Source of the DNA: Phallusia mammillata
Lineage: Eukaryota
Length of the DNA stretch: 64,000 bases
Direction: 5' to 3'
NCBI GenBank assembly: GCA_965637545.1
Contig: OZ281495.1
Coordinates: 14,136,001-14,200,000, forward strand
The notes beneath the pieces are model-generated. The model was not told where the DNA came from and did no database searches. It saw only the letters and a program-made list of their open reading frames with translations. Of the stretch, positions 32,017 to 59,177 are shown in pieces (position 1 is the first letter of the stretch; each line of letters begins with the position of its first letter). Both the position numbers and the translations under genes were made by a program.

Positions 32017-35000
32017 ATGGTCTTGATAAGGCTAAAACGGTTAAGTAAACGTCTGATTGTATCCATTGTAATCGCCCTAGCAGTTGTACACACAATACGG
32101 ATTGTTCTAACTTCTCCTAATCATGATTATGACGAAAATGTTGAGATTCCATTGAAAAGGTAAGCGGCTTTTACATTTGAGACAAGCAATACCGAACAAG
32201 CTATGGCATAATGTATGACCTGTGATGCAATATTTGGAGCTATTTGGGGGTTTGCTTTAAAGCAACTGAAATTAAACACCTCTTAACAATACTATTTCAG
32301 AACAATGTGATTAGAAAATCAACCTTGTTTGTTCCAATTTGTAGGTTACCGCCACACGACCAACTGAATATGTTGAGGTTTAAGACAGTGGCTAAGAAAT
32401 ATATTTGATTGACGTTACATTAAAACTGCATATACCGATGGAAATTCATTTCCCTCGAACAAATTACCAACCCTCACTAGGGCGAAGCGATATTCGAGAT
32501 TTACAATGTCGCTTCTACAAATATTTATTGTCATTGGGTCTGGTAAACAGAGGATACACATTTCACAGCTTCTTTCTCATAGTGTTAAGGAAGACCGGAA
32601 TATGGCAGCGTTTGTAGAACCCGAAGTTGTTGAGAAGGTTAAACAGCCAACGTCATCGCAATCTATCTTTTGTGAAAGTAAGTTGACATTTTAAAGTAGA
32701 TTATCAACACTGTTGATGACAACAGTAATTGTTAAAACGTCTGTAGATTGTATTCTGCTAACACTTCAGCAGTATTTTTTATCAGATTACATTATCCATA
32801 AATGCAGAATTCAATGTTGTAAATACCTTACCAAATTTGGACATTTAGTTAAATCACTAAAACGGTTTAATGGTTTACAGCTACTGATCTTGGTTGCTTT
32901 AAACCGGCGGCTACGAACGGGCACATGACTCACAATGACATGACACTTACGTGGTGCGCAAACTATTGCTTCAAACGGTGAGACTATGAAAGAACTGTTG
33001 ATTTTCTGACGTTCAATTATAAACCCTTTTGTGTTGTGTCATGTTTAGAAACAAACAATACGCTGGAATTACGCAAGCAATAAAGTGCGTATGTGGCGAC
33101 AGAGCCAATCAACTTGTTGACCTTACATTAGATGGAAAATGTAATGTTCCATGCCCAGGAGATGAAAAGGAAAATTGTGGTGGATCTGACAGTATAAGAG
33201 CGTACAGATTGAAAGGGCAGTGTGTAAACGGTAAGCACGTGCTCTTACATAAGAGCTTAAAGAGGTCAGTATGTAAACAGGTTTGGATTTTTTTGTTATA
33301 GGGCAGAGACAGCAAATCTCACTACAGGGTACTATAACACGCGTTAAATTATCTTATAATTAGTATCATTCCAATGTTATGTTAAACAGACAAAATCGAC
33401 AACATTTGTTGTTGTTTGTCTAGAATGTTAAGCCTTTTGCAACATCGGTGATGTGACTCAACCTTTTACCGTGTTTGCCAGTTTCGCCCTTTACTTATTT
33501 GCACTATGTGCGTTTAACCCTTGTGATTCTTTTGTCTTCTTTTGCTGCCATTGCCAGTTAAGATCGGATTCTTCCACTGAGTTTTGAAAGCAATTTAAAG
33601 TCAAACTGCACCATTCGTATGTTTGTGCAGAAAAATGCGATGTTTGAAAGTAATTTCTTCTTAAAATTTTCCTGTTTGATTTAGACTTGATTTTTTACCT
33701 TCATCATCCACTGAAAGTGGGAAGTGCAAACTCATGACAAAAATCAATGCATTTTTAGACTCGTTCACCGATGATTTTGCCGAGACACGGTGGAGGGGGT
33801 GTTTTTCTGCACCAAGACCCGATGCTGCCTTCAGATTCTTCTCCATGGCAATCACCACTTCCCAATGCCTGCTGACATGTGAACGCTCGTATTACCCGAT
33901 TGCTGTAGTGGCTGATAGTGGAAGTTCATGTAGATGCGGACATATGACAGCAAGGTATGATCTGACCCCTACTGACAACACAACTAGCGTTTGTTTTGGG
34001 GTGCTATGTAAACTTGCCCAAAAAGGGTTTGTATGAAGAGTTGTAGGCACCCGATGAGTAACGATTCGCAAACAAAGTAATTCAACTTTTTTGTGATAGT
34101 TTATGGGACCAACCAAACCAACAGTTACTTACAGACTTTTGTTGCTTACAGATTTAACCTTACCCAAAGGCTCAAAGACTGTGATGCAGTTGGAGCTGTT
34201 AAAGTTTATCGGACAATGGTGGAAGATTCGAGATGCGGCAACATCCATCTTCTTCCACCAGGATCTTACTCGAAAACTCTTCTCGCTTCCTACCCTGGTT
34301 CGGGCAATACCTGGACAAGATATCTGCTTGAAAAAGCAACTGGGATTTACACTGGAAGCGTGTTTTCGGATAGCAATTTATACCGAGATGGTAGGAAAAT
34401 TCATAATCATATAGTGGCAAATTATATTTTCAATCAATCAATTGTCTTCTGTTTAATTTGAACTGCAATAAACAGTTTATCATTACCTTGGAAGTGTGGG
34501 TGTAAAGCATACCCCAAAGCACGTGGTGGAGCAAGAGATTCATTTCAGTAACCATTGTCACATTTTGCTGGGAAGTAATTTCGTATAAAAGTGACCAAAT
34601 GACATTTAATATGACATCCAACCCTAAAAGTCCATAATAGTGCTTCAGTTTTTTTAGTATGAAGCCCTCATAAAAAGCGATAAACACAATGATCACGCAA
34701 GTACAAAACTTGTACACCAACAATAGCTTGTTTGGTGGGAAAATATATCTGATGGATCGGACCAATACATTGTTTTTTGACAGGTTTGCTTGGTGAGATG
34801 CACAGTGCAAGAGGTGAGTTTATTAAAAATCATCTTTTTGGAAACGGTCGCCCGGGTGAATCGCGAGTTGTGGTGGTGATACGAAATCCTTATCGTGCTC
34901 TGCTCGCTTATCTTAACTACTTATATTCCGGAGGCTTCCATACTGGCTCACTGCCGCAAGATTTTTTTCTACAACCTAAATATGGTAAGTTACAACACCT

Positions 35001-35874
35001 TTCAAAACTTTTACACAGAACAAATATTTCTGGCAAGTGTGAACTTATTTTGTGTACCCAGTTTCATTTTCAAATCTTGTGTTTTGTGGCATTTGACTTT
35101 TTGTCACTGGCTTATTATGTTACTTCGTATTTTAAATACGGTATAAAATATCAGTCACCATATACCAGCAAACAATCAAAGCAAATCAAAAACTGTGGAC
35201 AAGTTTCCCTTATAACACTTCTACCGAAACCAAATAGTTGATTTTCTTTATTCCTAGCCCTTAGAATCAGTGAATAAAAATGTTTTACTATAGCGCAGTG
35301 CTTATTGCATAACGTTAAAGGATGGTGTGGTATTATTTTGTTGTTAACGGCTTCCTACTCTGAAATGACTTCCTACCCTGATTTCTGCCAGTGTCCCGCC
35401 TGATTTGTGCTTGCTCAAGGTAAACAAACCGTTACGGTTGATGGGAACCGTACCACCCTCGAGGGCACCAAACACTCAGTTGTTTTTGCAGCTATTACTC
35501 AACAGTCTATTCGTGAACCTATTCGTCACTGGAAAGCAGTTCCTACGCAGGTGATTAAGAGCGGTAAACCCTATCTCATCATTTACTTTGAAGACATCGT
35601 GAGCGACCCGATCGGCAGCGTTCGGGAAATGGTCAACTTTGCATCTAACCCTCTGCTGCGCCCTAGCGACTTAGAGAGCCGGCTCGCTTGCTTGAGCCAA
35701 GAAACAACTGGCCAGTTTAAACGCAAGTCGAAGAAATTTCCGTTTAATCCCTTTAAGCCCGAAGTGGCTCAGATGCTTAATACTGCGATTGTTGAAGTTA
35801 GGCAAATGCTGAAAAACGCTGGGGTTAAAAAAGAGCTGCCCCCTTACGAATATGATCCCGATTACGCAAGATAG
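32017..35874 (+). CDS. WSCD: WSC-domain-containing sulfotransferase (WSCD1/WSCD2-like), type II membrane protein
   Basis: Exon 32017-32159 gives a basic tail plus TM anchor ([16 protein letters not shown]). WSC domain 1 in 32881-32977 and 33049-33231 (LGCF...[10 protein letters not shown]...CVCG...[15 protein letters not shown]). WSC domain 2 in 33759-33954 (WRGCF...CLLTC...CRCG). Sulfotransferase in 34152-34390 ([28 protein letters not shown], 5'-PSB), 34784-34984 ([14 protein letters not shown], 3'-PB) and 35492-35874 (FEDIVSDP). Small exons at ~32345-32377 and ~32481-32541 are phase-compatible but uncertain. Confidence 0.9.
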
Positions 35875-38250: not shown

Positions 38251-41080
38251 CTAGGTGGAAGAAGTTTTAGCGTTTTTTCGGTGTCTGCTTTTGCTTTGTA
38301 AAGAAACGGACAATGCTGGATTTAAAACATCTGAAGTTTTTCCGCATGTAAGGGAATTTAACAGCTGCTTCAAACTCGAACGAAATTCTTCATCTCGTAC
38401 GCTGTATACAAGAACGTTCACAAAGCTGCGAGGAAAACAACGAAATAGGCATGGAAAAATAGTTTATAAACAGCGTCAGTGTTTTTAAATTTCAACATAT
38501 CGACAAAGTATTTTTATTTGACGTCAACCGTGAACGTTTGTTTTGTGTTTTGATTTACCTGTTGGACATGCTGAGGTAGACACAGATAAGATAGGGAAGG
38601 GAAATATTGTTGCAATCCAAGTACTTGACGTAGGAAAGAATAGCAACTACCACGATGGGAACTGCAATGTATAATAGCTTTAAACTGCTAGGTTTGTTTG
38701 TATGTTAATGTGTATCTTAATTTGTACTTAATTTATGAAACGTTTTTCTTACTTAAGGTTATTGTAAATCCGAGCTGCATAACAGCCACTGTTTTAAAAA
38801 TGTAAAACTCTTTTCTCAAATTATTTCCCGGTCGCAAGTCGCTGCCTGTAGATGATCTTCGTAACGCCGTGCCTTTGCGCAATTCATACCAACCATGCGA
38901 CAAAGTTGCAACAGAGATGCCAATCTAAAAAAATCAAAAACGTTTGTACACCTCAAACTTCAAAGCTTCACACAAACATAAGGGACTCAGAATGGTAGTT
39001 AAATAGTAAGTTAAAATATGTTGTTCAACTTCCAAAACACACGTGAGGCTATCATAAGAATTAAGTATCAAATACAACAACGATACACATATGTACTAAT
39101 TCATAGTGTACAGTTAACAAGGTGTTCCAATTTCACTACAATTCTTGACCACGTACACTTTGTTTCAACTCATAAACAGCATAAAAATTGAAACTAACCA
39201 TTAACAGGTAGGGCAGGACCGTGGTCACAAGCACAAGGATACCGGCAACGATTCGCGGCCACTGGTTTGGCTCTGGAGCGTCCACCACAGCAATTGAGAA
39301 TATGAACGCTGTATGGTAGTAGGTAAACACCAAAGCGTTGGGAAACCAAACTGAAATACAGACAGTCATAATGCTTTTGAACTTTTGGTTGACAGAAAGT
39401 TTTGGCTAAAAATCGTTTGATTTGTCAGATACGTTGTTGGTCACAGAAGATTTTTGTCCATGGCAGAAGTGATTTCATATTATGACACTTAGTACTAATA
39501 AGATACCTACGCAATGTATCCTTAATGATGGCCTAATTGACCACTATCACGTGGTTTCGATGTCAAGAGAAAATGCAGCACAAACATGGCCCAATTTTCC
39601 ATGACATTACAGTAATCGAATTACATTCAAAAAGGCCTTTTAGCTTACTTACATATGTCAAGTATGTACAAGAAATCAAACAGTTCAACAAAAATTTGCA
39701 GTTATTATGTTTCTTTGTTTGCCATCTACCCACTTTCTGGTCAACCGTTACTGTATTGGCAACTAAGTGCTTCAGGTCACTAATGGTTTAATCCGGTCCT
39801 GACCTATGGAGTTAAATGTATCGCAATCTTTACTTACGAGGCACGGTTGTCGTGGCAAATGAGCAGATCCACACACACGCTAGACTGGCCCAAAGTCGTC
39901 CTGATTTTTGCAGCATATAACGAAACGGCCACCTGATGGCGTAAAGGCGCTGGAGGGCGAGGAGCACCAGGTGGTAGAGGGAGGCAGTAAAACTAACCAA
40001 GTAAAATATTCCGCCAATAGTCGCTTGTGTGGAGCCATGTAATTTCAGTTGGCGTTGCTCGATTACGTTAGCCGTTGAGTTGATCATCCATGAGAAATTA
40101 AAGATGGTCACGAACAAGATTTGGATTCCTGTACACAAAACTAAATAGGAAGAAAGGTTTCATTCTTAACATGCTGGTCCACATTAAACTAATACACCAA
40201 AGAGATAAGTTTTATTAGATGTTTCGCCATGCATCTTTTAAAATCGGCCGTCAATGAAAAGGGAACAAGCTGTTGGCAAACATAAATCTGCACCGATTAG
40301 AAGGACGTGGAAGTGGCAATGGCTTTGCGGACAGATAACGGTTGGACGACAAGGCTTACAGTAGGTTGCCATGCAGACCGAAACGCTAGATGCAGTGGGT
40401 ACCTTTTCTTTTTTCTCAGTGCAGTTTCGAGTACATGATGCAGTTTAAACCAATGTACTAACGTTGATATTTGTACTCTACAATGTTTATGAAACGTTGC
40501 ATTCCTACTTCTGGCTTAATGCAACTCGACATAGCATTTAAACTTGGATAAGCTATAACGTCGGTTTGACTATGCAAATTTTGCAAAATAAAACGGTATA
40601 TAAGATAAGATATATTTTAATACCTGTAAGTAAATCAGCAACCGCCAGAGAACACTTGATACGGTAACAAAATTTGGGTTTCGTCGTCTTCAAGGCGCTA
40701 TAAATTACCAATAAGTTGCCGGATACAATCAGAAGACCCAACAAAACGGCAACCATTGCAAAGAAGCCCGCTCCTACCATGCTACATTGTGCACAATCTC
40801 GTAACGCAGTAGCATCGCACTCCGTTCTGGCAGCTTGAGTACAAAATCCTGGAAAACCACAAATGCTGAAATCTTGTGTTTCAGTGCTGAGGCGTTGAGG
40901 AAGTCTTAAATTCACAGTTGTTGAAACGTTTGATGCTAGTTTCTGATCAGATTTGTTTCCGATCAGTGTGTGTACTCCCGGCAAATCTCTTGTGTCTGCC
41001 GATAAAGACGGACTAGTTGTGCTCGTTTCTTGAAAATGAACAAACACAAATTGCCGAACAGTATCCGGATTCCTTGACAT
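38251..41080 (-). CDS. Orphan class-A (rhodopsin-like) GPCR1, 6 coding exons, short ectodomain
   Basis: Exons about 41080-40624, 40128-39838, 39350-39199, 38924-38753, 38661-38559, 38425-38251. TM1 GN, TM2 SLAVADLLTG, TM3 LQRLYAIRWP, TM4 VW, TM5 LP, TM6 QLGFTITLxP, TM7 SNSFVNVLVYS, helix 8 FRSSLKQLL. Start codon placement tentative. Confidence 0.88.
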
Positions 41081-43538
41081 CGTTGGAAATGCTTTTTTTC
41101 CGATCTTGAAAACTGTAGTAATGCTCACTTTAAAACATTGTATGATCCAATATGTTTTTTTCCTCTTTTACTAAACTACAACTAGCAACCAAACACGATT
41201 ACCCTGTTTTGAGTCTTTTTCAGGCAGAACAAACTATCTCTACAGTAAACGTGTCCAACTCCGTTTAAAAAGTTTGCATGTAAATCAGTCTTGCCACAGT
41301 TTAGGTAAAAGGTGACAAAAAAAGATCTTGTTTCTGTCTAATTTTCGTCCGGTACGCTTGAGGCCCAACCACAATATACGGAACAATGCCTAAGGCTACG
41401 TTAACATTCCTCTCAAAAACAAAACCCAGCATCAAGATAATGCGCAGTGTCGCCAACGCATTTCGAAGATGACTGAAACTAATGCAGTTGGTTTCTTTTT
41501 GGTTATGGTAAGCTGGATTTTAAAGTATCTAGCAACAGCTTAAAGCTGTCATAGTAAATTGGGAATACGCTGGCACAAAAAAAAGAACACTTTTAAAAGA
41601 TTAAATGAAGATTAGTTACTCAGGAGCGTACTCAATTGAAACCCTTTTTTCAACGACATGCAAAATTATTAATTAAATCGTGCAAAATGATATAAAGACA
41701 TACTCCAAGCCCTATGGGCATTGTTTCATCTACGCGAAAAAACGTCGCTGGCTGCTGACTTCTCCGAAGCCTCACGCACCGACTTAGTGATGGTTTCTCC
41801 TTCGTCGGGTGTCGGATGAAAACAATGCCCATAGCATAATATTGTGCTTTCGCAGCAATTATCAATTAGTGTCATCAGCATATGTATTCTTTTTCTTAGA
41901 AATGTCATGAAAAGTTAGTCTACACTGGAAGGAATAATCCCGTTTGTTTCCATAATTTTGAGTTCCTGTTCGTTAAAATATTACTCATACTCAAGATAAT
42001 AACTTAGATGGTCATTTTCCATGATCTGTTCAAATTATTTTTATACATCACTCTTCACGACGTGTTTGGCGTTGTTGATGTATTGTTGGCATTCGACACA
42101 TTTATCCGCCTGTCTGCAACCATTTCTAAAATTCGGACTAGTATTCTGTAAAGCAGTGATCAATGTGTCTTGATCTTAAGCAATTTATTCTGTTTATGGC
42201 GAGATTGGTTAAATTGTCATCTAATTGGTGCTTTGTAGTCTGTTGGTTGGCATACAAGTAGACGTAGCCTGTGGCCGACATCTTCCAAGCCTCGGGCTCC
42301 TCGATTATTTGGTTATGTGATTGCCTCATTTCAAAACCGAAAATCTTATGAAATGTTTTGAAGCCGATTGTGATTACCTACCCAGAGTACACTAGGTGGT
42401 TGATGCAATACCTATTGTTTATTGTGCTTTCGTTCAATTTAAATTTACGTTGTCTATGTTTTAATATGAGATTGTTCGGGAAAATAGTGGTGTGTTTTAG
42501 GACATACGCATGGTTGCAACAAAGTGGTCTGACCATGAAAATAACGATCATTACGATAACAGCTAATGGTGTTTTCGTTTTTTAGCCAATTACGTTTAGA
42601 GTCCGCGGGTCAATAGGTGACTGTGTGTGTCCGTTACATGTTAATTGAGAGGTTGCCAGCCGATTTGCAAAAGTAGTTAAAAAAGGAAGTTAGTCAGTAA
42701 ACAGCAACTGTCAGTGTCGATAGACATCGGAACACGAAATAATTAAAACTTAGACAACTCAGTTATTAGCGGTTGCAGAGTTGTAACCATGCCTAAATTC
42801 TCGACTCTAACCCGGTTCGAACCCGATTTAAGAGTTAAATCCAAATTAGATTTAAAGGTTGTTGGAAGGGTGGCAAAAAATGATGCTGAGTGTTAAGTCA
42901 GGCCCGAATCAAACCCGTTTTATTAAACCTCAAGCCCGAACTCGACCCGAAAAGCCCGGCCTGACTTACAGCTGTGAGCGACAAACGTTTAGTCATTCTC
43001 ATTTGCCGTTTCTCCCTCACAAGTATGATTACTGATGACTAAACGGGAATCTCAATGAGCTATCATGTGATAAGAGAATGCGACTTGGGTACGAAAACGT
43101 CGAAACTTGGGATTAGAGAAGGAATCTATTGAACTTGTTCTGTGCCCGCTTGCTTTTTTAGGTCTAGCAGCTTTAAGGAGCAAAGTGAATATATGGGGTC
43201 AAGAAAAGAATATTCAGAAATAATCAGAATGTTACTTAGGATAAAGGCGTAAAAAGACTCTTTAGGTTCAATTTATTGTTTTAAAACTCGCTTGCATAGA
43301 TTGAAAAGTTAGAAGTTGTCGGTTGCAGCATTCAGAGATAAATAAATACAGTAACTTTGTGGCTATTTTAGTATAGAATGTAGAGTTATACTTACGCGAG
43401 CTTTTCCGTACGTTATAGGGTTGAACCAGCTGTAGTTGGGTGTGATGCTCTTCGTCTTGTTTGACTAAGGCAAATTAATATATTGTGTCATTTTATTTGT
43501 AAAGATTTAGAAAATAAAAGTGTCATACAGAAGTGACT

Positions 43539-46500
43539 ATGTCCGGGGAAAGTAGCATGAAAACCGTCTTGGAAACTGTGACAATATCTGACATTTTATT
43601 GCCAACTGCAACCTCAGAAGATTTGGTAAATTTAACAAGTTCTTCAATTATTGATTCGGAACTTCCATTAACAATTCATGAAGTAACATACGTTCAACCC
43701 GAAACTCACAAGTTCATATTTCCAGTCGTAGCCAAGGCACATCCAGTGCCAAGAACATTTTCAGATGATTTTTTAACTACCTCGTCTTCTGGATCTGGGT
43801 TTACACTAAGCTATACTCACGACAAATTGCTTTCTGGATCTGGACTTCCTCAATACCTTTTACAAACTAGACATGGAATAGATTTTGAACCCCCACCAGA
43901 AGACTTTCAAGCGATACCGTTTTCAGGATCAGGATCCGGTTCAGAGGATCTAGTCTTAAGTGAAACACTAAGTGTTCCCATGGAAACGAGTTTCCATTTT
44001 CAACAAATTTTCCATTTTCAACAACCTCAAACTGCACAGTTTGAAACGGATTCATTTATGCCTTCCCACGTAATACAAGACCGCCAACCAATGCTGGCAC
44101 CCGTTCAGTTTCCTTTCCAACCTATTCAGTCATTCAGTACGGAATCATTTGAGGCCCTTTCTCCTTCATTCATTGGAGAGAATGAGTTATTGTTTCAACT
44201 TCCAGTCCAAGAACCGTCGCCCATAGATTTAACCCCTTACTTGCATCGCATCAATGCTAGTGAACTGCTGCATAGTTACGGTGGAGAACTTGTTAATGAT
44301 AACACAACATTAGGACAATTTCCAACCGCTTTCTACGATCCAACTACCAACACCTTGGGTTCAACTTTAAGAAACGCGTCTAGGCTTTGCGGATTTCCAG
44401 CATTTTGTTCTGTTGAAGCACATAAAACATGTGCAGGAACGGTTTTATCAAATTGTGATGAGTGCAGTATGTCCGGAGCAGCCTTGTTTGCTTCAGTCGC
44501 AATTTTTCTGGGAGTTCTAATATTGCTGGGAAACGCAATTGTGATTCGGAGTGCGTTGACAAAAAACAAGAAAGACAAAGATTTCTTTTCTAAAATCAAA
44601 TGTTCTTTGGCATTGGCAGATATGCTTACTGGTAAGTAAAGTTTGCTTGTTCTCCGCTCAATACCCATTGCCTAAAACAAATACTATTGACAGAAGTATA
44701 ACAAGAAAAGACTAAAAAAGTTTAAAATTAGCACTATTCCATTCATGTTCTAATTTTTCCAAGGTATTGAAATCTTGTGCGTGATCATGTACAACTTTAG
44801 CTGGGCGGTCAATTCAACAGCGAAAGAGATTGATCATCGACAGTTGCAGTTAAGGGGATCCACCCAGGCCGTCGTAGGTGGAATATTTTATTTGCTTGGG
44901 TTCACGTCATCTCTCTATCATCTCGTCTTGCTTGGCGGACAACGCTTGTACGCTATCTGGCGGCCAGTTAAATACAAGCTTCAGCCCACAAGGGTTGTCT
45001 ACATAGGACTTGCTGCTGTCTGGGCGTTCGCTTTGGTTACAGCAACAATTCCACGTAAGCAATTAAATGAAAACAAAAATCAAGGTTTTCAAATTACATG
45101 GACATTTTTTTATTTTTTACAGTACCTTTCGATATAGATTGTCAATAGTAACTAATTTTTCGTTTACTGCCTTGTAATGATATACTAACTTACCTTAATT
45201 TTTTTAACGTTCTTTGCTCACACCTTACCAGAAGCAACAAAATCATAACGTTTTCTGATAGATGTATAAAATATGCTAAAAAGAGGGGCAGACTATCAGG
45301 ATCAGTGTTACCTTGTATTTACGAAACAGAAATATTCATTTCGTCTACTTAGAAGGCATCGTCAGTTTCCGTCTTTTTCTTATAAGTTATGTTTGTTTGA
45401 TAGATAATAATCTTTCTTTCTACAATTAACTGACAATGTGACAATTAAAACAAGGTTCCAAATAAGATGGCGCTTGCCTTTACTGAAACTGAGTTGCATG
45501 TATTTCTTTACAGTTTGGATTCCTGACGTTTTTACATTTTCCTACATTCACACAAATTTTATTTATTACGTCGCTATTTCCGATATCGAACCAACACCTA
45601 AACGATTTGCCGAAGCAATGGCGATTCCTGTAGTTACAATCCTTGTTCCTTTTATTTTTATGGTAAGTGGCAAGAATCTCCTATTGTCCTATTATAAAAA
45701 TAGTTCACCAAGTATGCGTGATAAGTGTCGGTATTTATACCGGCTTTGTTTTGTTTTTCTTCTTACACAGTGACTTTCCTTTTCTCTTTAAGAGCCTATC
45801 TTAAGCACGGTTCAAACTCATTTGAAACCCTGCACGGCCGATGAGAAAATGGATTGTCCAAACGAATTCTTTTTTATTTATCTTTTTGTTTATTAATCTC
45901 TCCGGCTTTTTTGTTCTACATCAAGCTCATGTCCCTATGGGTGACATTATTAATTCAAGTTGAACTTTGGTGTCACAGACTTTTTTCACCGGAGTCACCG
46001 CTTTTCTTGCAAAAGGTAGAATTCGCCAAAGTCGCCGCTTGCAAGGAAATCAGGGAAGGCTAAGGAACAACAACACTGAAACCGATCTTTTCAAAACTGT
46101 CGCGTGCATGCAAATTGGATTTACAGTCACATTGAGTGAGTATAAACAAATCACAAAGCCACAATGGATAAGATTAAAGTAGACAGTATTTCACCAATGA
46201 AAACGATCTGTTGTTCTATACGGAATTTGTTTTTGTGGCCCTTTTCGATCCAATCTGTTTCCTTCAGGCACAAATTGTATCAGAGTGAAACGATAATCAG
46301 GTTTATATTAATTAACTGAATTTTGGTACTTTTTCTCTAGTTCCAGTGCTGGTTGCGACTTTACTGTCCTACACTGATAGATTGACTTGTGATAATGTTT
46401 CCCTACCTTATCTCATCTGCTTTTATATAAGCATGTCCAACAGGTAACATTTTGTTGTCCAAAAAAAAATATATTTACCAAACCGTGTGGTTGAGTTGTA

Positions 46501-47018
46501 ATAATGATGAATATATCCCATGTTTACGTTGTCCGCCTAAAAGTAAGCAAAATGGCATGCATTAAAATAAATTGCCATAATTTAAATATAATTGAACGAG
46601 TAAACAAACAAGATAACTTGAACCGAAAGATTCTCACTTTTACGTGGCGTCGCAGTTACACTTGCGTCGCCTTTACGGTCTAATTTTTGAAATTCGTTTA
46701 CCCCGAAGCTGTTTATTTTTAAATCAGCATTGCTACGTTCAACGAATGTCGTTAAAACTGATCTATTGTGTTTTGGATAAATTTTTGATTGTGTCCACAT
46801 TTCTAAACAACTGTGGAAAATCATTCCTAAACATTGTTGTAATTTGTTGTTTTAGCTTAGTCAATGTTGTGGTCTACAGTGCAAGGGACGCGGGATTTCG
46901 ATCCACTCTCCGCGAAATGTTTTGCATCAAATTGCGGTTATCATCAAAATCAAGCAGAACGCAAACTACCAGGGTGTGTCGTCAGAAAGAAAGTGGAAAA
47001 ACAACTTTACCAGTATAA
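43539..47018 (+). CDS. Orphan class-A GPCR2 with ~310-aa Ser/Thr/Pro-rich ectodomain
   Basis: Exons 43539-44631, 44764-45054, 45514-45662, 45979-46135, 46341-46443, 46856-47018. Same intron positions and motifs as GPCR1; start MSGESS matches MSGK starts of GPCR3/4. Confidence 0.92.
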
Positions 47019-48119
47019 CTTACCCAAGCAAAAATGCCTTGATGGATTGATTTTGATCGTGAGTTTGTGTCATGGCCGTCAAGAGCAAATTGACTTCAGA
47101 GAGTTCTCACTGTATTATTGTCTGGTTCTACGTTTATATTGCTATTTTGTCGTTGTTGTTTCAGCAGCGTACGGCTCATTCCAACTCGCAGAATTCCTTT
47201 TCTAATTGCAAGACATCGACACAGCGCAAATTTCTCTTTTAACATTTTGTGCTTTATATCCCCTTTATATTCCGATTTTGCCAAAATAATGTTACATAGT
47301 TTAATCCGCTACTAGCGGGCTTAAATTCAGACTAACGTAATATGTGTATTTTTTAATTCTACAATATTCTGCATAAAAATTTGAACTTATACTGGCTGTG
47401 AAGTCTCCATTTAAATTTGTAAACTTTAAAGGGCAATAAGCAGTGTGTGACCAGATCGAAAAGCAATAGTATCTCACATTTCCCATATTTCAATCTGTTT
47501 CCTGTGCGGTTGTTTCAAAAGCAGTTTTGACAAGTCAAAGCCTGTTTGTCGGCACACTAGTAAATGTTGGTCGATATACCAGCAGTAATATTAGCTTACA
47601 GCGAACTAATTCCGAGCCTCGGGCTTTTTACCTGGGTTGCTTAAGCGGTTGACTTATTGCCAAACGGGCACGTTCAGAAATAGTAAGGTCTACAAACAAC
47701 AGAGCTTTTCAGACATTGCGCAAAACAGCACGTGCGAAATGGTCGACTTTCAAAACTAACATAGTTGACATTTTGTTCCACAATGTCTATTATTGAGTGT
47801 CGTTTAAAACGTAGTTTGTCATACAGCAAAAAATATCAGTCGTTTCGTAGCATTTAAAAGATAGATAATTATCTAATCGATTATAATTGTTTACCGACCG
47901 AACTTGTGGCTGTTAGTTAGTCAGATAGTTGACAAATGTACTTCCTTAATCGACAGCAACGGGCGATCTCGATTAGCGTCAACATGATGTAGTTTTATAG
48001 GAGAGGTTTTTTTTAACCAATAGCACGATGATAGTTTGGGAATCCCATTGTGCCAACGTATCACAATTTTGCATCTCATTAGGTAAAGTAATTTGAAGTG
48101 CTGTTCCACTAAAACGATT

Positions 48120-51100
48120 ATGTCCGGAAAAAGTGGTATTGAAGCAGATGGAGGAAATTTCTCATCATTGGACGCAACAAGAACCTCAAAAACGTTGCTC
48201 AGTTCAACACTTTCTACAAACAATAAATTGGATCTTTTACCCATAATTCATGATATCACACTTCCCCAAACAAAAACGTATGGAAATCCATATCAAGCAC
48301 CACCGGTTATGGGCTCTGAACCACCTAAGGAATATATGCAAACTAATAGGTTTTCTGGTTCATCAAATAATCAAGATGATTTTGCTGCAACTTCGTTTTC
48401 CGGTTCTGGATTTTCCGGTTTTGGGTTTTCCGGATCTGGGTCTGGTCATTCTTCAGAGATCATTCAAACAAGCAGCTTTTCGGGATCTGGAAAATCACCA
48501 GACACATTAACATGGATACCTCATTTTGAATCAGCATCTGGTTCTGGATTTATTTCATATAGCGAAAACTATGTTCCGTTTCCAACATGGACGTACGTTT
48601 ATATTAAACGTACTACACCAAAACGACTTCAAAACGTCATACAAGACCGGAAGCCAATTTTACCCACTATGTTGTATTATCGTCCAAAGTTATTGGCGCG
48701 ACTACCTTCAAAAGTACTTCACTTTTCGCCGCAAGAATCAGTGCCTATATATTTAGACCCGGACTTGGGCAACACCACCGCTACTGATATTCATGACAAC
48801 AATTTTAATGAGCTCGACAATGTTAACACAAGTTTAGCAAAAATTTTAACCCCTTCTTATAATCCAACTGGAACCATGATACTGGATTCGACTTTAAAGA
48901 ACTCGTCCGAGCTTTGCGGATTTCCAGGATTTTGTTATGTTGAAGCACAGAAAACATGTGCAGGAACGCTTTTATCGCATTGTGATGAGTGTAGTATGGC
49001 CGGAGCAGCTTTGTTTGCTTTAGTCGCAATTATCCTGGGAGTTCTAATATTGCTAGGAAACGCAATTGTGATTCGAAGTGCGTTAAAAACAAGCAAGAAA
49101 GGAAAAGATTTCTTTTCCAAGATTAAATGCTCTTTGGCATTGGCAGATATGCTTACTGGTGAGTACTCCTAAGTAATGGTTTTTTTATTTCGCTTTATAT
49201 CCAATACATAAAACATTACTAAAAGTAGTGTAGTTCATCACGCAAAATATAGACAAACATTGGTTTTCAAATTTGGACCATTGTACAGACGGGCAGCACT
49301 ATTGATGCACCAAATTTGCTGCTTTGTAAACAACAGATCATATCTATTTAATTTTTAAGGCATCGAGATCTTGTGCGTGGCCATGTATAACTTTAGCTGG
49401 ACGATCAATTCAACAGCGAAAGAGATTGATCATCGGCAGTTGCAGTTCAGGGGATCCACCAGGGCCGTTGTCGGTGGAATTTTTTATTTGCTTGGGTTCA
49501 CGTCATCTCTCTATCATCTCGTGTTTCTTGGCGGACAACGCTTGTACGCCATCTGGCGGCCAGTTAAATACAAGCTTCAGCCCACAAGGGTTGTCTACAT
49601 AGGACTTGCTGCTGTCTGGGCTTTCGCATTGGGTATAGCAACCATACCGCGTAAGTGTTTCACTGTCAAAAGAGTTTGAAACTGGTTTTGCGCTATTCAT
49701 AGTTTTGAAAGAGAAAGTACGTACTTTTATTATATTGTTCGGCAATAAGCCAACCTTATTTTAAATGTCTTTACATTGAATTAGTAGTGACCGCTATTTC
49801 TTTTCGATTTAGCTGTTTCCGGCTTGATGAAAAAGTTTTCCGGCAAACGCCATTTTTGGCAACTAAACCAAACTAAACTAAACTTTTTTCTTTGCAGTTT
49901 GGATTCCCGACGTTTTCACATTCTCTTATATTCACACAATTTTTCTCTTTGCGGTCGCCATTTCCGACATCCAACCAACACCTAAAAGATTTGCCGAAGC
50001 AATGGCAATCCCTGTGGTAACAATCCTTGCTCCGTTTATTTTTATGGTAAGTCTTTCTTTCTTGTATCATTATCTTATCATGCATGATGCACATGTGTTT
50101 ACGGAGACCATTAGAAACTGAAATGCTTCAAATAGTCGAAAAATTTCACTAAAAAAATTAATAGATTGAAGTGCTTTACTTAGTACTTAGTACACAAAGG
50201 CTACATAAACATAGATCAGTCGTAAATACCTAACACTTGAGTTAAAAACGCCTATTTCACAAGAACGAAGAAAAGTACTCTTGCGTTTCAGACTATTCTG
50301 ACTGGATTCACAGCCGTTCTTGCAAAAAGACAAATTCGAAAAAGACGCAATCTTCAAGAAAATCTTGGAAGGTTACAGAACAGCAACGCTGAAATGAATC
50401 TTTTCAGAACTGTCGCGTACATGCAGATCGGATTTACAGTCACATTAGGTGAGCGAAAACTAGAGAAACTGGTGTAGTACCTCAAGACATAAGACGAAAG
50501 AAATCAAAAATGCCATTTATAACAAAATACGAGTGGCACTGCACTGCTAGATTATTTAAGATTAAACGCAATTCAGTAAACCAATTTAGTGATATTAGGG
50601 GTGTTTGTAGGAGTATCATCAATCTAATGCAGGGGTTCCCAACCTTTTTACGATCTATTACCACTTGGACGCTCTGTACTGCCCCGCGTACCGAACTTGA
50701 TCGAGTCATATTTTCGTCAGAAGAAGAATATTGGCCTACTAAAATAACACTAAAGCACCACAACTAAATTTAATGAGATTTTTGTTTACTGTCCACCAAT
50801 TAGTCGATGCGCGGTGCAAATTTGCTAACAGCGCTTCGAAAGTCATTTCCGGGCGCACCTATAGTTTTTGGTACTCCCGTATCACCTGAAAAACATTTGC
50901 GTATCACTGATGGTACGCGTTCCACAGGTTGGGAACCCCTGAACTAATAAAAGGGTAAATATGAGTGTTTTTTCTTGTGATAAAATGTGCATATAGTCAT
51001 CAGATTTGTGCTATTTTAATGAAATATGCTACATACATTGCAGTTCCGGTGCTGGTTCCGACTGTGCTGAGCTACACCTATGGATTGACTTGTGATAACG

Positions 51101-51619
51101 TCTCTCTGCCATTCCTTATTTGCTTTTACATGAGCATGTCCAACAGGTAACGATAACCTAATGTGTAACCTAAACAACCTTTATTAAAAACCTGTGCAAT
51201 ATTCTAAAATGAATTAACATTACTATGATCTTGTTTGCTTATATGATGTTGATATGGTTCACTTTATCCATGTAATGCAAGAAACAAAAATAGCTTAACA
51301 AAAGTTTAAGATGAGTCGAAGCTAATTGAATTTGATAGGTTTTTAAACTCCAATCAGGGTTTTATGATGTGTCTGAAATTGCCACACAGTAATAGAAGGA
51401 ACTTTGGTTCTGAAACCAAACCCTAGTTTCTAAAAATGTTTTTTTTTTCTTCTTAGTTTGGTTAACGTGGTGGTCTACAGTGTAAGGGATGCGGGTTTTC
51501 GATCTACTATTCGCGAAATGTTTTGTTTCAAATTGCGGTTGCCATCACGATCGACCAAGTCGCAAACTACCAGACTCACTCACCAGAAGGAAAGTGAAAG
51601 ACCAACTTCACCAGTTTAA
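48120..51619 (+). CDS. Orphan class-A GPCR3 with FSGSG-repeat ectodomain
   Basis: Exons 48120-49158, 49360-49650, 49898-50046, 50292-50448, 51044-51146, 51457-51619; open frame across all junctions. Confidence 0.92.
48396..48440 (+). repeat. Coding 15-bp tandem repeat x3 (F-S-G-S/F-G)
   Basis: ttttccggttctgga ttttccggttttggg ttttccggatctggg. Confidence 0.9.
50630..50941. mobile_element. Shorter (312 bp), inverted copy of the 37100-37702 MITE family in GPCR3 intron 4
   Basis: Perfect TIR caggggttcccaacct / aggttgggaacccctg; degraded TSD atctaatg / aactaata; paralogous GPCR4 intron has a single atctaata at ~57044 with no insert. Confidence 0.88.
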
Positions 51620-52252
51620 ACATTACCCAACATAAGTTCTCATGAAACATTTCTTTTGTTTTGTTACGCATTTTGACAGGGTATATATTGTACTTTTACT
51701 CGCTTTTTTTTGTGACCTTCGACGACACTTTGATTTAGGGTAGTTGTTCACTACCTGGTGTTAACGGTACCCCCATGGTCTGTGGAGCCTTCAGGAATAC
51801 GTGAACGCGAAAACTGTGAAATATTGTGAAACGTCTGAATGGGGTGAAATACACGTATAGGGTTCAACAGATGTAATGCTTATAGAAAGGGTCAGTAACT
51901 ATTCTAAAAGGCTAAGAAATCCTGATTTAGAGCGAGTATTTGTTGTTTTACTGTTGTCAACTTACATTTTGATAAATGTTGTTTATTGAGTCGACAACAC
52001 TAAAAACACGGATTCTTAACACCTAAAATGTCGTTTTATAACACGCTAGAGTACGATAAATTGAATGAATCAAAAACACAATTGCAGCTCAGTTGGTATG
52101 AAGCCAGCCTGGATTCGCACGTAACAAACCTTTTACTCTCGTAAGCAAGAAGCAAAAAAACAAAAATAAATGTCAAACCTTGCACCAATGTAGTGCTGCA
52201 CATCTCCATTGATGTACAAATTTGATATTAAATCATCTTTGTAATTTCGAAG

Positions 52253-53552
52253 GCATTGAGAGCTTGTGCGTGGCAATGTACAACTTTAGCTGGATGGGCA
52301 ATTTAACAGCGGACTAAATTCATCGGCAGTTGCAGTTAAGGGAGTCCACCCGGGACGACGTGGGAGAAATTTTTGTTTGCTTAGGTTCACGTCATCTTTC
52401 TATCATCTCGTTTTTATTGCCGGACATAGCTTGTACGCCATCTGGCGACCAGTTAAATACAAGCTTCAGCCCACAAGGGTTGTCTACATAGGACTTGCTG
52501 CCGTATGGACAATCGACTTTATTACAGCAGTCAGCAATCCTTTCTAAGAATTCTGTAGACCAATCTTTCGTTCACTATCTTGTAACGATGCACAAACTGT
52601 TTTTCTACGTGGTTTGCTCATTCCCTACCAAAAAATACAAAATCATAATGTTTTCTGGTCAATATACAGAATATACTCGGCAGAAGAGCGCCAGTGTAAT
52701 TATTTATTTACGAAACAAAAGTATGAGTGATTATAAACCAAGCACAAAACCACAATGGATTAGTTAAAGCAGACAGTAAAACCACATATCGTAAATACAC
52801 ATAAGTGCATTACTCATAATCGTGTTGTGCTGGCTTACATAGAATCCTAGTCATTATTAATGCAGGAAAACAATTTACTAAATCACATTCGTAAATTTGA
52901 TGGCTAAAAAAATATAAAATATGTTGTGCTATGCGGAATTTTCTGTGGCTCTTTTTGATTCTCATCTATTTTCTTCACGCACAACTCGTATTAGAGTGCA
53001 CGATCATCATGTCTATACTATTTTACTAAAGTTTGTTACTTTTTCTCCAGTTCCGGTGCTGGTTGCGACTTTACTGACAACGTCCGTCTAATAAAGATAT
53101 CCACAAAACAGTGTGTTTGAGTTGTACTAATGATGATTACATCCCGTGTTTACGCTGTCCGCGTAAAAAAGTAAAAATAAATTGCCATCATCCAAATATA
53201 AATGCACGAGTAATACACAAACAAGATAACTAACTACAAGTCTTTCACTTTTTACGTGACGTCGCATCGACGCAATGGTCTAATTTTCGGAATACGTTTA
53301 CCCTAATCTGTTTATTTTGGAATCAGCATTGAAGTGTAATACTGTGAAATCATCTTATTTCTAAACATTGCTGTACGTTTTTGTCTCAGCTTGGTTAAGG
53401 TTGTGGTCTACAGTGTCAGGGACGCGGATTTTCGATCTAATCTCCGCGAAATGTTTTGCATCAAATTGCGGTTATCATCAACATCAAGCACAACGCAAAG
53501 TACCAGGGTGTGTGATAAGAAGGAAAGTGGAAAAACAACTTCACTAGTATAA
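52253..53552 (+). pseudogene. GPCR pseudogene relic (exon 2, part of exon 5, exon 6; exons 1, 3 and most of 4 missing)
   Basis: 52253-~52520 is exon 2 with TAA at 52315 and indels; 52720-52780 and 52920-53330 match GPCR2 introns 4-5; 53051-53076 is truncated exon 5; 53390-53552 matches GPCR2 exon 6. Confidence 0.88.
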
Positions 53553-54613: not shown

Positions 54614-57600
54614 ATGTCCGGAAAAAATAGTATTGGAACAGATCTGGAAACTTCCACGGGGTTTGACGCAACAAGAACCTCCATAACGTTGCTCACTTCA
54701 ACATCTTCCACAATGATTGAATTGGATATTTCACCCACAATTCATGATATCACAGTTCCACAAACAAAAACGTATGGGAATCTATATCAATCACCATTGG
54801 TTATGGGCTCTGGACAATTTAAGGAATACGTGCAAACTGATGAATTCTCTGGTCCTCCAATTAATCAAGATGATTTTGCTGCAACTTCGTTTACCGGTTC
54901 TGGATTTTCCGGTTCTGGATTTTCCGGTTCTGGGTTTTCCGGATTTGGGTCTGGTCATTCTTCAGAGTTAAATCAAACCATCAGTTTTTCGGGATCTGGA
55001 AATTCACAGAACAAATCAACATGGATACCTCATTTTGAATCAGCATCCGGTTCAGGAGATATTTTATATAACGAAACCTACTTTCCGAAAAAAACACGGA
55101 CAAACACATATAAAATCAAAATCGGATTTTCGAATAATCCAATACAAGACCGGATGCCAATTTTGTACACGTCACTGACACACGTTATTAAGACCGAAGT
55201 ATTTTATTTTGTGCCCCAAGAATCAATGCCCATATCATTAGACCCGGACTTAAATTTAACCGTTCCTTACGATCCAACTGGTACCATGATACTAGATACG
55301 ATGTTAAAGAACTCGTCTAAGCTTTGCGGATTTCCAGGATTTTGTTCTGTTGAAGCACAGAAAACATGTGCAGAGACAGTTTTATCACATTGTGATGAAT
55401 GTAGTATGGCCGGAGCAGCCTTGTTTGCTTCAGTCGCAATTATCCTGGCAGTTCTAATACTGCTGGGAAACGCAATTGTGATTCGAAGTGCGTTGAAGAG
55501 AAAGGGAAAAGATTTCTTTTTAAAGATTAAATTTTCTTTGGCATTGGCAGATATGCTTACTGGTGAGTACTCCTTAGTAATTGTTCTTTTGTTTTGCTTC
55601 ATATCCAATAACTAAAAAATCACTGAAATGAGTGTAGTTCATCACAAAACATGTACCTTCAAAAGCAAAATAATGACAATGCTTAGGTTTTCAAATTTGA
55701 ACCATTGTATACAGAAGGGTAACGCTATTGATGTACCAAATTTAGGGCATTGAACACAACAGATCATCATTTATTTAATTTTTAAGGCATCGAGATTTTG
55801 TGCGTGGCCATGTACAACTTTAGCTGGACGATCAATTCAACAGCGAAAGAGATTGATTATCGGCAGTTGCAGTTCAGGGGATCCACCCGGTCTATTGTCG
55901 GTGGAATTTTTTATTTGCTTGGGTTTACGTCATCTCTCTATCATCTCGTGTTTCTTGGCGGACAACGCTTGTACGCTGTCTGGCGGCCAGTTAAATACAA
56001 GCTTCAGCCCACAAGGGTTGTCTACATAGGACTTGCTGCTGTCTGGGCTTTCGCTTTAGTTACCGCAACCATACCGCGTAAGTGTTTTACCGTCAATAAA
56101 ACTCGAAACAGGTTTTGCATTATTCAGAGTTTCGCCAGGTAAAAAAAAACATACATTTGGAATCCCGTTTCTCGCCAATGTCGACCTTATGGTTTGTTAG
56201 TCTTTACAATAAACCTTTACTATAGTGCCCTCTACTTTTGTGCCATCTACATAATTTAAAATTGATCAACTTTTTCCGGCTTGATGAGAAACTGGTAAAG
56301 CTGCAAATTTTAGCAACTAAAACAAACGTTTGTTTGCAGTTTGGTTTCCTGACGTTTTTACATTCTCCTACATTCATACAATCTTTCTTTTTGCTGTCGC
56401 TATTACCGACATCCAACCAACACCTAAAAGATTTGCCGAAGCAATGGCAATCCCTGTGGTAACAATCCTTGTTCCTTTCATTTTTATGGTAAGCCGCATT
56501 ATTTTCTTACTTCTAATTATGCTCGCAGCAATTGTTTTGAGTCCATGAGAAACTCGTATATTGCTCCATATAGTCGAAAAATTACGGTCAAAATTAACAT
56601 AATTGATCGGACAGTTACAAGTTGCGAAGTTAAAAATACGTGTTCAACAAACTCAACAAAAAGTTTATCAAAGGTAACGACAATGTTTTTATGCTGTGCG
56701 AATCAGACTGTTCTCACCGGATTCACGGCTTTTCTTGCAAGAAGACAAATTCGAAAACGACGCCTTTTGCAAGAAAACCTGGGAAGAGCGGGACGGTTTC
56801 AGAATAACAACGCCGAAATAAATCTTTTCAAAACTGTGGCGTACATGCAGATCGGATTTACAGTAACATTAGGTGAGTAAAAATATAGAAACAACTGCAG
56901 AAGTACCCATCAAAACATTATCCGGGATAAATCAAAAATACCATTTAGAACAATATGCCAGTCGTACTGCATTGCTAGATTATATTTAAGATTAAAGTCA
57001 TGGTAATTCAGTAAACCAATTTAGTGGTATTTGGGGTATTTAACAATCTAATAAAAGGTAAATATATGTGTTACAAAAATTTTGCATCGTTTCATTATCA
57101 CCTTGTTTCACATTAGTCACCTATGTCTTGTAGTCCTTATATCAGTGGTGGGCAAACTACGGCCCGCGGGCCGCATGCGGCCCGGCAAAGGAGTTCATGC
57201 GGCCCGCCAAATGTTTCCGAGTAACGCTGAATAGTACTATGAGCACAGGCGCAGAGTTTTAAAAATACCGGGGGGTGCGACTTGCCGATACCAATACCAT
57301 GTGCAGTATCTGTACCCGTACGATACTTTGGAACTAAACACAGATACTTTTCACGTGCTTTAGCCTGCCACGTTATTATGCAAATCGTCACTTGACACAA
57401 TTTCTTCGTTCGATGAAAGTAAAAGCGATTCACGTTTTCAAATACAGCCCACTTTGCACTGGTGACGCCCAAACTTTGGCACAAGGACTTTATCAACAAA
57501 AAACGTGGTTCAGCCTTTGTTGCAACAAACGCTTGTTTTTTTGAAACAATTACAATTGTAGCTTTTCAACCACTGTTTGTACAATCATGAACAAACGTAT

Positions 57601-59177
57601 TTGCATAAAGCTGAAAATATACTATGTAATAATTTTGCGCAGGGGTGCACAACCTGCGGCCGCAATCTATTAATATTTTGATTTTCAAACTGCTAAAACA
57701 GATTTCGTGGGACTGGAAAAAAGATTACCAGTCTAGTAACCATATGCGCCAGGCTTTTTATGTGCAAACAATGCGAAAAGAACGGGCACTGCAATCGTCA
57801 CAATACAGTTTTTGACGTCATAAACAGTTAGCTCCGTTCAGCTAAACTTATGCACAAGTTAGAAATTGTTAATCAGAGCATTTTAGGCGACTTTAAATGG
57901 TATATATATGATACAAACCTTATTTTTTACATCAGTTGTTTTAAAACAAAACAACAAGCAAGCAATTGGCGGCCGTTGGTGAAATACCATGCGGCCCGAT
58001 AAGATTATAAACTTTTGAATGCGGCCCTTGCACTGAAAAGTTTGCCCACCCCTGCCTTATATGATCTTTAATTTACTAAGTTTGTTTGTCGTAAGTTGTT
58101 TCCTATGTGTGCATATAGGCCCAAAACGTGTTTATCTTAATTTCACGATGTGGATTTTATGTATTTCACGTTGATCCCTATTCACATTTTTTGTTACGTT
58201 CACGTTTGTTTTTAACTGCTTTAATCCCCGGCACACTTTGCGCTCATCTATCCTTGCGTTTCGCAGCATTCCAAGTACAATTTCAGGTGTAACCATCCTC
58301 GTTAGGGCGATGATAATTGACAGTGGGTTTCTACCATGTGACTTGTGAGTTTCCTTGTTTCTTTATTATTTCTGTCGCGAGCTTTTTTCGTGTGTTTCAA
58401 GCTCTTTTGCGGACCACGTAAGGTTGTGAGGAGTTATTCCCCTGCTGTTTATGTTTTGAAATTTGTGATGCGCAGTGACCTTGCCAATATCGTACAGTTT
58501 TATATACTGTTTTTAAATAAAGACAGTAGTGCTCGAACGCGTCTAAACTATACTAGCCGTTACTGCTGCGTTTAAAGGCTTTTGGCAACCATTAAAGTAA
58601 GCGTCAAACAAGTTTTTCTTTCGTCTTGTGATGAAATGTTCATGATTAACAGATTTGTGCTGTTTTACTGAAATATTGCTACATGCTTTGCAGTTCCGGT
58701 GCTGGTTGCGACTGTGCTGAGCTACACGTATGAATTGACTTGTGATAACATCTCTCTGCCATATCTCATTTGCTTTTACATGAGCATGTCAAACAGGTAA
58801 CGGTAACCTAACGTGTATCCCTAACACAACAACCCAAAACGTAGTAAATAAAAATAACTAAAACAAAGTTTTGAATGGGATAAAGCTAATTGAATTGAGA
58901 AATATTAAATAAAATCAGGGTTTAATGACGTGTCTGAACTTGACACACAGTTATAGAAGGAACTTTGGTCCTAAAACCAAGCCCTTCTCAACTTATCTTT
59001 TTTTATCTTAGCTTGGTTAACGTGGTGGTCTACAGTGCAAGAGACGCGAGGTTTCGATCTACTCTCCGCGAAATGTTTTGTTTCAAATTGCGGTTGCCAT
59101 CGCAGAAGAAGAACAAGTCGCAAACTACCAGACTCTCTCATCAGAAGGAAAGTGAAAGAACAACTTCAACAGTTTAA
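54614..59177 (+). CDS. Orphan class-A GPCR4 with FSGSG-repeat ectodomain
   Basis: Exons 54614-55562, 55787-56077, 56340-56488, 56707-56872, 58694-58796, 59012-59177; closest to GPCR3. Confidence 0.92.
54890..54949 (+). repeat. Coding 15-bp tandem repeat x4 (F-S/T-G-S/F-G)
   Basis: tttaccggttctgga ttttccggttctgga ttttccggttctggg ttttccggatttggg. Confidence 0.9.
57143..58054. mobile_element. hAT-type non-autonomous element (912 bp) in GPCR4 intron 4
   Basis: TIRs cagtggtgggcaaact / agtttgcccacccctg (1 mismatch); perfect 8-bp TSD ccttatat; ends resemble the 31317-31793 element; an internal TIR-like caggggtgcacaacct at 57640; absent from GPCR3 intron 4. Confidence 0.92.

Follow-up and report, generated by a model that had tools for sequence, protein, structure and literature searches.

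In a 64,000-nucleotide stretch of the genome of the ascidian Phallusia mammillata (GenBank assembly GCA_965637545.1, contig OZ281495.1, positions 14,136,001–14,200,000 of the forward strand; hereafter the window, in which all positions below are counted), four paralogous receptor genes of six exons each, G1–G4, are clustered between about 38.3 and 59.2 kb. Three of them, G2, G3 and G4, encode predicted seven-transmembrane (7TM) G-protein-coupled receptors (GPCRs) with N-terminal tails of about 265–310 residues, in which Ser-Gly (SG) dipeptides form clusters that resemble the glycosaminoglycan (GAG) attachment sites of syndecans. The window has a GC content of 36–40% and contains no N.

Gene structure and expression

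G2 occupies 43539–47018 on the plus strand. Its first exon (43539–44631, from the open reading frame (ORF), its translation and a donor joint) starts with Met-Ser-Gly and encodes an ectodomain of about 311 residues, a five-cysteine module (Cys-module), the first transmembrane segment (TM1), the first intracellular loop (ICL1) and the start of TM2. Exon 2 (44764–45054, from complementary DNA (cDNA) joints and a Pfam 7tm_1 match) runs from TM2 to the start of TM4 and has QRLYAI instead of DRY. Exon 3 (45514–45662; acceptor joint in cDNA, and gene model) encodes the second extracellular loop (ECL2) and TM5, and exon 4 (45979–46135; donor joint 46135>46341) encodes ICL3 and the start of TM6. The end of TM6, ECL3 and the start of TM7 are in exon 5 (46341–46443; a cDNA contig of run X11), and NVVVY, the C-tail and the stop codon are in exon 6 (46856–47018; gene model, and a loose end of the X11 contig that matches the exon's start). 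Assembled with the cDNA joints, the G2 model has 651 codons without a stop.

G3 (48120–51619) and G4 (54614–59177) lie downstream on the same strand. Their first exons are at 48120–49158 and 54614–55562. Exons 2–6 were modelled in silico at 49360–49650, 49898–50046, 50292–50448, 51044–51146 and 51457–51619 for G3, and at 55787–56077, 56340–56488, 56707–56872, 58694–58796 and 59012–59177 for G4. These in silico models have canonical splice sites and no internal stop, and predict proteins of 633 (G3) and 607 (G4) residues.

G2 is transcribed and spliced. We aligned contigs of four public runs from the same organism to 42600–47300, a region that covers G2 only. The cDNA-like contigs of three runs span 43649–44054, which is the whole SG region of G2, without a joint; other contigs show GT..AG joints at 44630>44763, 45054>45514 and 46135>46341. 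Because contigs cover the SG region and others carry these joints, the region belongs to an exon that is transcribed, in a gene that is spliced. We rejected the possibility that the SG stretch is a missed intron or non-coding DNA, since all three genes keep an open frame there and the cDNA contigs pass straight through it. Two further observations concern the sequence of G2. An AG at 43529-30, with a poor pyrimidine tract, is a candidate cis- or trans-splice acceptor. At 43807, inside the SG region, the contigs of runs X6 and X10 have C in place of T, probably an allelic difference.

The 7TM core of G2 is recognizable. TM1–TM6 appear as hydropathy peaks, and TM7 (NSLVNVVVY) can be read from the sequence. 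Exon 2 alone matches Pfam 7tm_1 at 4.2e-5, under the cut-off; full-length family members score 58–70 bits against a cut-off of 30.5. The closest structures in the PDB are generic class-A receptors (CB1, NPY1R and the beta-1 adrenergic receptor; E ~1e-8). The canonical microswitches are absent in G2–G4, with GQRLYAI for DRY in TM3 and NVVVY for NPxxY in TM7. The activation microswitches are thus rewritten, and therefore G-protein coupling cannot be assumed. Throughout the family described below, QRL(Y) stands for DRY and NVVVY or NVLVY for NPxxY. Judged by sequence, G2–G4 are members of a divergent class-A clade.

Ser-Gly clusters and their conservation

The region before TM1 contains 8 SG dipeptides in G2, 13 in G3 and 14 in G4. 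Composition-preserving shuffles of this region (20,000 per gene) give means of 2.0, 3.2 and 3.4; the excess has P = 2.5e-4 for G2, and none of the 20,000 shuffles reaches the observed count for G3 or G4. The sister paralog G1 is an internal negative comparison: its exon 1 (40598–41080, minus strand) encodes a 101-residue tail without any Ser-Gly.

The SG dipeptides of G2–G4 are grouped in three to four clusters of the (F/L/S/A)-SGSG type. Cluster 1 of G2 (43782–43799, SSSGSG, with DDF upstream) aligns with DDFAATSFSGSG of G3 and G4. Cluster 2 (43833–43844) reads LL-SGSG-L. Cluster 3 (43899–43949; EDFQAIPFSGSGSGSED) reads EDFQAIPF-SGSGSGS-ED and is covered by cDNA contigs at 43808–43940 and 43899–44054. 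The SG zones of G3 (48354–48548) and G4 (54809–55057) also lie on the plus strand inside exon 1, and have the order DDFAATSF(S/T)GSG, then three to four FSGSG units, then FSGSG and ESASGSG. Each Ser-Gly peptide quoted in the preliminary description of this DNA is found in frame in the three translations, and its observation of syndecan-like motifs in the receptor N-tails is borne out: the motifs are present and non-random (P ≤ 2.5e-4 per gene).

The centre of each SG zone is repetitive at the DNA level. In G3 and G4 it is a 15-bp tandem repeat that encodes FSGSG (48395–48441 with 3.1 copies, and 54889–54950 with 4.1 copies), and in G2 it is a 6-bp tandem repeat within cluster 3 (43923–43944). 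Such variation in copy number between paralogs, in a slippage-prone core, is what would be expected if the clusters were a flexible spacer of low complexity, born of slippage in a fast-evolving mucin-like tail that carries N-glycans or O-GalNAc-type glycans and no GAG; the likeness to syndecans would then be convergent composition. We take this explanation seriously, and give it rather less than an even chance.

Comparison of the paralogs bears on a spacer in both directions. The tail of G2 is 33–36% identical to those of G3 and G4, compared with 85–86% for the Cys-module and TM1 part. The preliminary description had stated that the motifs persist although the rest of the ectodomain has diverged heavily, and this holds in part: between G2 and G3, in a tail of 33% identity, five of the eight G2 SG serines align with SG serines, and all three clusters hold their alignment positions between G2 and G3/G4. 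Moreover, the differences at the codons of conserved Ser and Gly are synonymous, as in TCT GGA TCT GGG versus TCC GGT TCT GGA. A slippage-born spacer leaves this positional conservation with synonymous divergence unexplained. The ratio of nonsynonymous to synonymous substitution (dN/dS) is about 1.0 (G3/G4) and 0.9 (G2/G3) over the first 90 alignment columns, 0.5–0.6 in the SG zone and 0.18–0.30 in the Cys-module and TM1 part. Since 0.5–0.6 compares with about 1.0 in the first 90 columns, the SG zone appears moderately constrained within an otherwise nearly free tail. On the other side, values of 0.5–1.0 over the tail and a Ser plus Thr content of about 22–26% are also in keeping with a fast-evolving, mucin-like spacer.

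Synonymous divergence is uneven along exon 1. Between G2 and G3 it is about 0.23 in the Cys-module and TM1 part and about 1.1 in the preceding 300 codons; between G3 and G4 the corresponding values are about 0.26 and 0.36. This suggests gene conversion between paralogs in the 3′ part of exon 1 (44400–44631 versus 48930–49158). Alternatively, the N-terminal part may be misaligned, or the tail may be of separate origin.

A tunicate receptor family with an excess of SGSG

From the first exons of the four genes we built a profile, which we compared with 1.84 billion cluster representatives. The search returned 148 proteins, and every match is confined to the Cys-module and TM1 (profile positions ~233–326); it detected no homolog of the SG-rich tail of G2–G4 outside the G1–G4 cluster. 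All named matches are ascidian (Ciona intestinalis, Phallusia mammillata and Clavelina lepadiformis). The family is marked by the Cys-module (C-x-x-P-x-x-C ... C ... C-x-x-C) directly before TM1, the relevant columns of which are invariant in G1–G4. Exon 1 ends after A-D-x-L-T-G, and many of the family matches are exon-1-only ORFs that end in ...LTG. G1–G4 thus share with tunicate orphan rhodopsin-type GPCRs the Cys-module with TM1, the exon-1 boundary after ...ADxLTG, QRL(Y)A and long N-tails without domains. When G2 exon 1 was compared with a word-indexed protein collection, there was no match; this tells us little, since full-length relatives probably exceed the collection's length window and the proteins of this genome are probably absent from it. 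NCBIfam had no match on the homologs.

The automatic names of the homologs disagree, and the Phallusia members are called 'relaxin receptor 2'. Membership of the LGR/relaxin-receptor or chemokine-receptor groups, as these names suggest, was rejected, because the PDB search shows generic class-A similarity only. With named relatives that are all ascidian and closest structures that are only generic class A, G1–G4 form a tunicate-specific orphan class-A clade. On this sequence evidence, G2–G4 are intact genes of recent duplication in a tunicate-specific orphan family of class-A-type GPCRs that is defined by the Cys-module before TM1, and each of the three has gained its long N-terminal tail. In 14 Ciona sequences described by Kamesh et al. 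2008 (PMC2396169), the TM regions resemble those of relaxin receptors and the N-termini are short and without domains. The present family may overlap their 'Unclassified LGR-like' or 'Other Rhodopsins' groups.

The family offers a test of the motif outside the cluster itself. Among the N-tails of 114 other representatives (12,480 residues, all from outside the window), SGSG occurs 9 times against an expectation of 0.32–0.37. It is the top tetrapeptide of the form XYXY; every other XYXY occurs at most twice, and the other permutations of two Ser and two Gly occur 0–1 times. Most occurrences are isolated 4-mers flanked by aromatic or aliphatic residues with Asp or Glu near (I-SGSG-W, Y-SGSG-Y, F-SGSG-G, L-SGSG-SDE). 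They are scattered over the family tree, a poorly resolved one built on 95 columns of the Cys-module and TM1: nine changes are needed, at least four of them forced by well-supported branches, so that SGSG has been gained or kept repeatedly.

These results count against a simple spacer. A low-complexity tract would not by itself single out SGSG as the sole strongly enriched XYXY, rather than GSGS, TSTS or ASAS, nor place it mostly as isolated 4-mers and not in runs. It is hard to explain by slippage alone why exact SGSG should recur in tails that are predicted to be extracellular. The family-wide excess of SGSG is a stronger sign of selection on the motif than the pattern within the cluster, and it adds to the observation from which we started.

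Other members of the family have different tails. Five proteins, from Clavelina and others (P0052, P0091, P0096, P0104 and P0125), carry five to seven Sushi repeats ahead of the same Cys-module and 7TM core; since Sushi repeats take this place in some members, the family appears to swap ectodomains before a constant module. In P0006 (Ciona XP_078484227.1), residues 1–40 form a Tyr/Asp/Glu-rich tract, YEDYEEYSYYDY..., that recalls the tyrosine-sulfation sites of chemokine-receptor N-termini, and by this analogy the tract is possibly another way to a polyanionic tail in the family. Other members have plainly mucin-like tails rich in Thr, Ser and Pro, as a spacer origin of the SG clusters would lead one to expect.

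Placement of the tail

GAG attachment presupposes a tail that belongs to the mature receptor and lies outside the cell. The 317-residue N-tail of G2 has 36 Asp plus Glu and 11 Lys plus Arg, with a net charge of −25. By contrast, Lys and Arg number 7 in ICL1, 5 in ICL2, 8 in ICL3 and 12 in the C-tail. This distribution, an acidic tail with Lys/Arg-rich intracellular loops and C-tail, places the tail outside the cell by the positive-inside rule. The family tails contain 2.7 N-glycosylation sequons per 100 residues, compared with 1.1 for the remainder of the full-length proteins. In 58 of 92 family members a sequon falls in the 15 residues that precede the Cys-module, and the conserved NSS/NAS sequon of G2–G4 is one of these. 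The G2–G4 tails should thus be extracellular, as predicted from the positive-inside rule and sequon density, which supports the earlier assumption that the N-terminal region is an extracellular part of the protein.

The contrary possibility is that the SG tail is missing from the mature surface receptor because it is cytosolic, is removed by proteolysis, or lies upstream of the true translation start. Hydropathy finds no signal peptide and no hidden TM or hydrophobic segment in residues 1–300 of G2 (maximum 19-residue value 0.83). The first 110 nt of the G2 ORF, at the 5′ end of the messenger RNA, are in no contig of the four runs, and none of these contigs bridges the SG region and the part of exon 1 that encodes TM1; continuity between the two rests on the open frame. 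Furthermore, the tail of G3 contains KR dibasic sites. Set against these points, all four paralogs begin with a conserved Met-Ser, three genes keep an open frame of more than 300 codons, and G2 does not share the dibasic sites. The conserved sequon adjoins the Cys-module, the tails are enriched in sequons and the charge asymmetry is strong. Homologs from RefSeq and transcripts likewise have tails of 70–230 residues without a signal peptide. We consider loss or misplacement of the tail very improbable.

The tail appears to have no fold of its own. AlphaFold2 gives no secondary structure for residues 1–260 of G2 (pLDDT ~30, from an alignment of only four sequences), with helices only from the Cys-module and TM1 on. 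None of the three tails contains a recognizable Pfam domain, the sole match (DUF3675 at 0.019 in G4) being noise.

Compatibility with glycosaminoglycan attachment

Structure and peptide arrays show that human xylosyltransferase 1 (XT1), which starts GAG chains, has a strict requirement for Ser with a small residue, Gly or Ala, next to it at +1, and tolerates aromatic residues at −1 (PMC5992326). It favours acidic and disfavours basic surroundings, and Gly occupies +1 in almost every known site (PMC5992326, PMC13038410). Known chondroitin sulfate (CS) sites are all in disordered or low-complexity regions (PMC10424144), and repetitive Ser-Gly is reported to favour heparan sulfate (HS) assembly (Zhang, David & Esko 1995). 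Ascidians, including the genus Phallusia, make HS and dermatan sulfate (DS) (PMC6627333, PMC7352385, PMC3127831), and Ciona expresses syndecan, glypicans and GAG synthases (PMC5612238).

The tails of G2–G4 fit this picture in part. Ser is followed by Gly at 8 + 13 + 14 = 35 sites. The acidic context is uneven. DDF or EDF lies 7–9 residues upstream of clusters 1 and 3, and SED, E-S-A and SGD occur at cluster 3. The preliminary description called repeated Ser-Gly near acidic and aromatic residues an established signal for GAG chains. What stands of this is that the acceptor is the one XT1 needs and that an aromatic residue at −1 is tolerated; what does not is the word established, for no consensus predicts GAG addition and calls from motif only are ambiguous (PMC13038410, PMC8418075).

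A number of observations weigh against GAG attachment. Prediction of GAG sites from the motif only is explicitly unreliable, as these two sources state. Asp or Glu is present at −4 to −2 for only 4 of the 35 SG sites, most of the central FSGSG units of G3 and G4 have no acidic residue within ±7, and Lys or His lies near some sites. The weak acidic context at most sites would suit a spacer, as would the absence of the motif from G1 and the slippage-prone repeats of variable copy number at the core. Since SGSG is missing from G1 and from about 90% of the family, the motif is dispensable for receptor function. With regard to the tail, translocation of a 300-residue segment that lacks a signal peptide may be inefficient, the gap in contig coverage described above includes the 5′ end of the G2 ORF, and a low pLDDT from four aligned sequences is a weak sign of disorder.

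A selected motif need not be a GAG site. SGSG could be a functional peptide of another kind, which docks a ligand or partner, is phosphorylated by a Golgi kinase, or receives a capped xylose without extension. Conservation and family-wide enrichment are expected of any selected motif, and SGSGSED and ESASGSG hold contexts like S-x-E/S. The discussion in PMC5992326 raises the prospect that XT1 xylosylates more sites than are elongated. Against such a function, only a few sites have Glu at +2. Moreover, besides the machinery of GAG initiation, we know of no protein or enzyme that recognizes aromatic-SGSG specifically. We think this explanation improbable, though less so than the loss of the tail.

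Neighbouring sequences

Between G3 and G4, plus-strand sequences at 52252–52532 and 53388–53540 form a partial fifth GPCR copy. It has a piece like a last exon, no exon 1, and exon-2-like sequence spread over two reading frames by a frameshift. It is probably a pseudogene that remains from tandem duplication. Upstream of the cluster, the plus-strand gene at 33029–35874 encodes a WSC domain (Pfam 2.6e-8); the exons after it contain a P-loop-like PGSGNTW and a weak Sulfotransfer_1 match, a layout that corresponds to a WSCD-like sulfotransferase architecture. That this gene adjoins candidate proteoglycan receptors may be due to chance.

Discussion

The nearest likeness to the tails of G2–G4 is found in syndecans. 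Syndecan-1 has DNFSGSGAG and syndecan-4 has DDFELSGSGDL. Syndecans and G2–G4 alike have an acidic ectodomain, known or predicted to be disordered, in which clustered SGSG stands beside aromatic and acidic residues. The likeness is in the motif only: there is no sequence homology, and the acidic flanks in G2–G4 are weaker. A syndecan spans the membrane once, as a type I protein, and has a signal peptide as well as a conserved C1-V-C2 cytoplasmic domain, whereas G2–G4 have seven predicted TM segments, no signal peptide and an unrelated C-tail. As their sequences indicate, G2–G4 are not syndecans.

Receptors that carry their own GAG are not without parallel. Betaglycan/TGFBR3, CD44 and neuropilin-1 are part-time proteoglycans, in which the SG sites that carry GAG belong to a juxtamembrane or linker region that is disordered. 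They share with the receptors proposed here the concept of a signalling or co-receptor protein that bears its own chain; however, all are single-pass and none is a 7TM protein with a multi-cluster SG tail. Among class-A GPCRs, Farzan and colleagues reportedly found in 2002 that CXCR4 carries CS at Ser18, a chain without a detected role. CXCR4 resembles G2–G4 in its class-A fold, its acidic N-tail without a signal peptide and its SG site. It differs in having one site in a tail of about 40 residues, compared with 8–14 SG sites in three to four clusters over a tail of about 300, and is unrelated to G2–G4 beyond the class-A fold. The preliminary description had considered a GAG-bearing class-A receptor unusual; this is a fair judgement, although in view of CXCR4 not an absolute one.

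Taking these lines together, we put the probability that the tails of G2–G4 are modified by GAG at roughly 0.45. In the mechanism we propose, TM1 would act as a reverse signal-anchor, so that the tail enters the lumen of the endoplasmic reticulum and Golgi. There, serines of the Ser-Gly motifs would be O-xylosylated, and at least some of them would be extended to HS or to CS/DS chains. The receptors would then be proteoglycans, either full-time or part-time. Such polyanionic chains could concentrate cationic ligands and present them to the 7TM core, or could tether the receptor to the matrix. This role is modelled on the chains of syndecan or betaglycan, which act for partner receptors.

A broader reading is that the family repeatedly equipped signal-peptide-less N-tails with polyanionic modules, namely SGSG clusters in G2–G4 and at least eight other sub-branches, Tyr/Asp/Glu tracts and mucin-like stretches, and that G2–G4 are true multi-chain HS/CS proteoglycan GPCRs with built-in GAG co-receptors. 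We regard this stronger form as doubtful.

If the chains are real, G2–G4 would be the first examples of a 7TM receptor that is itself a multi-chain proteoglycan, and would join ligand capture, as in syndecans and glypicans, to G-protein signalling in one polypeptide. Such a multi-chain design with built-in GAG is so far undescribed, as is the tunicate GPCR family itself. It would open a route to de-orphanizing the family through cationic GAG-binding ligands. It would also provide a natural test of what makes Ser-Gly a GAG site, in that the aromatic flanks here are strong and the acidic ones weak. Even without such chains, the excess of exact SGSG across the family still calls for an explanation.

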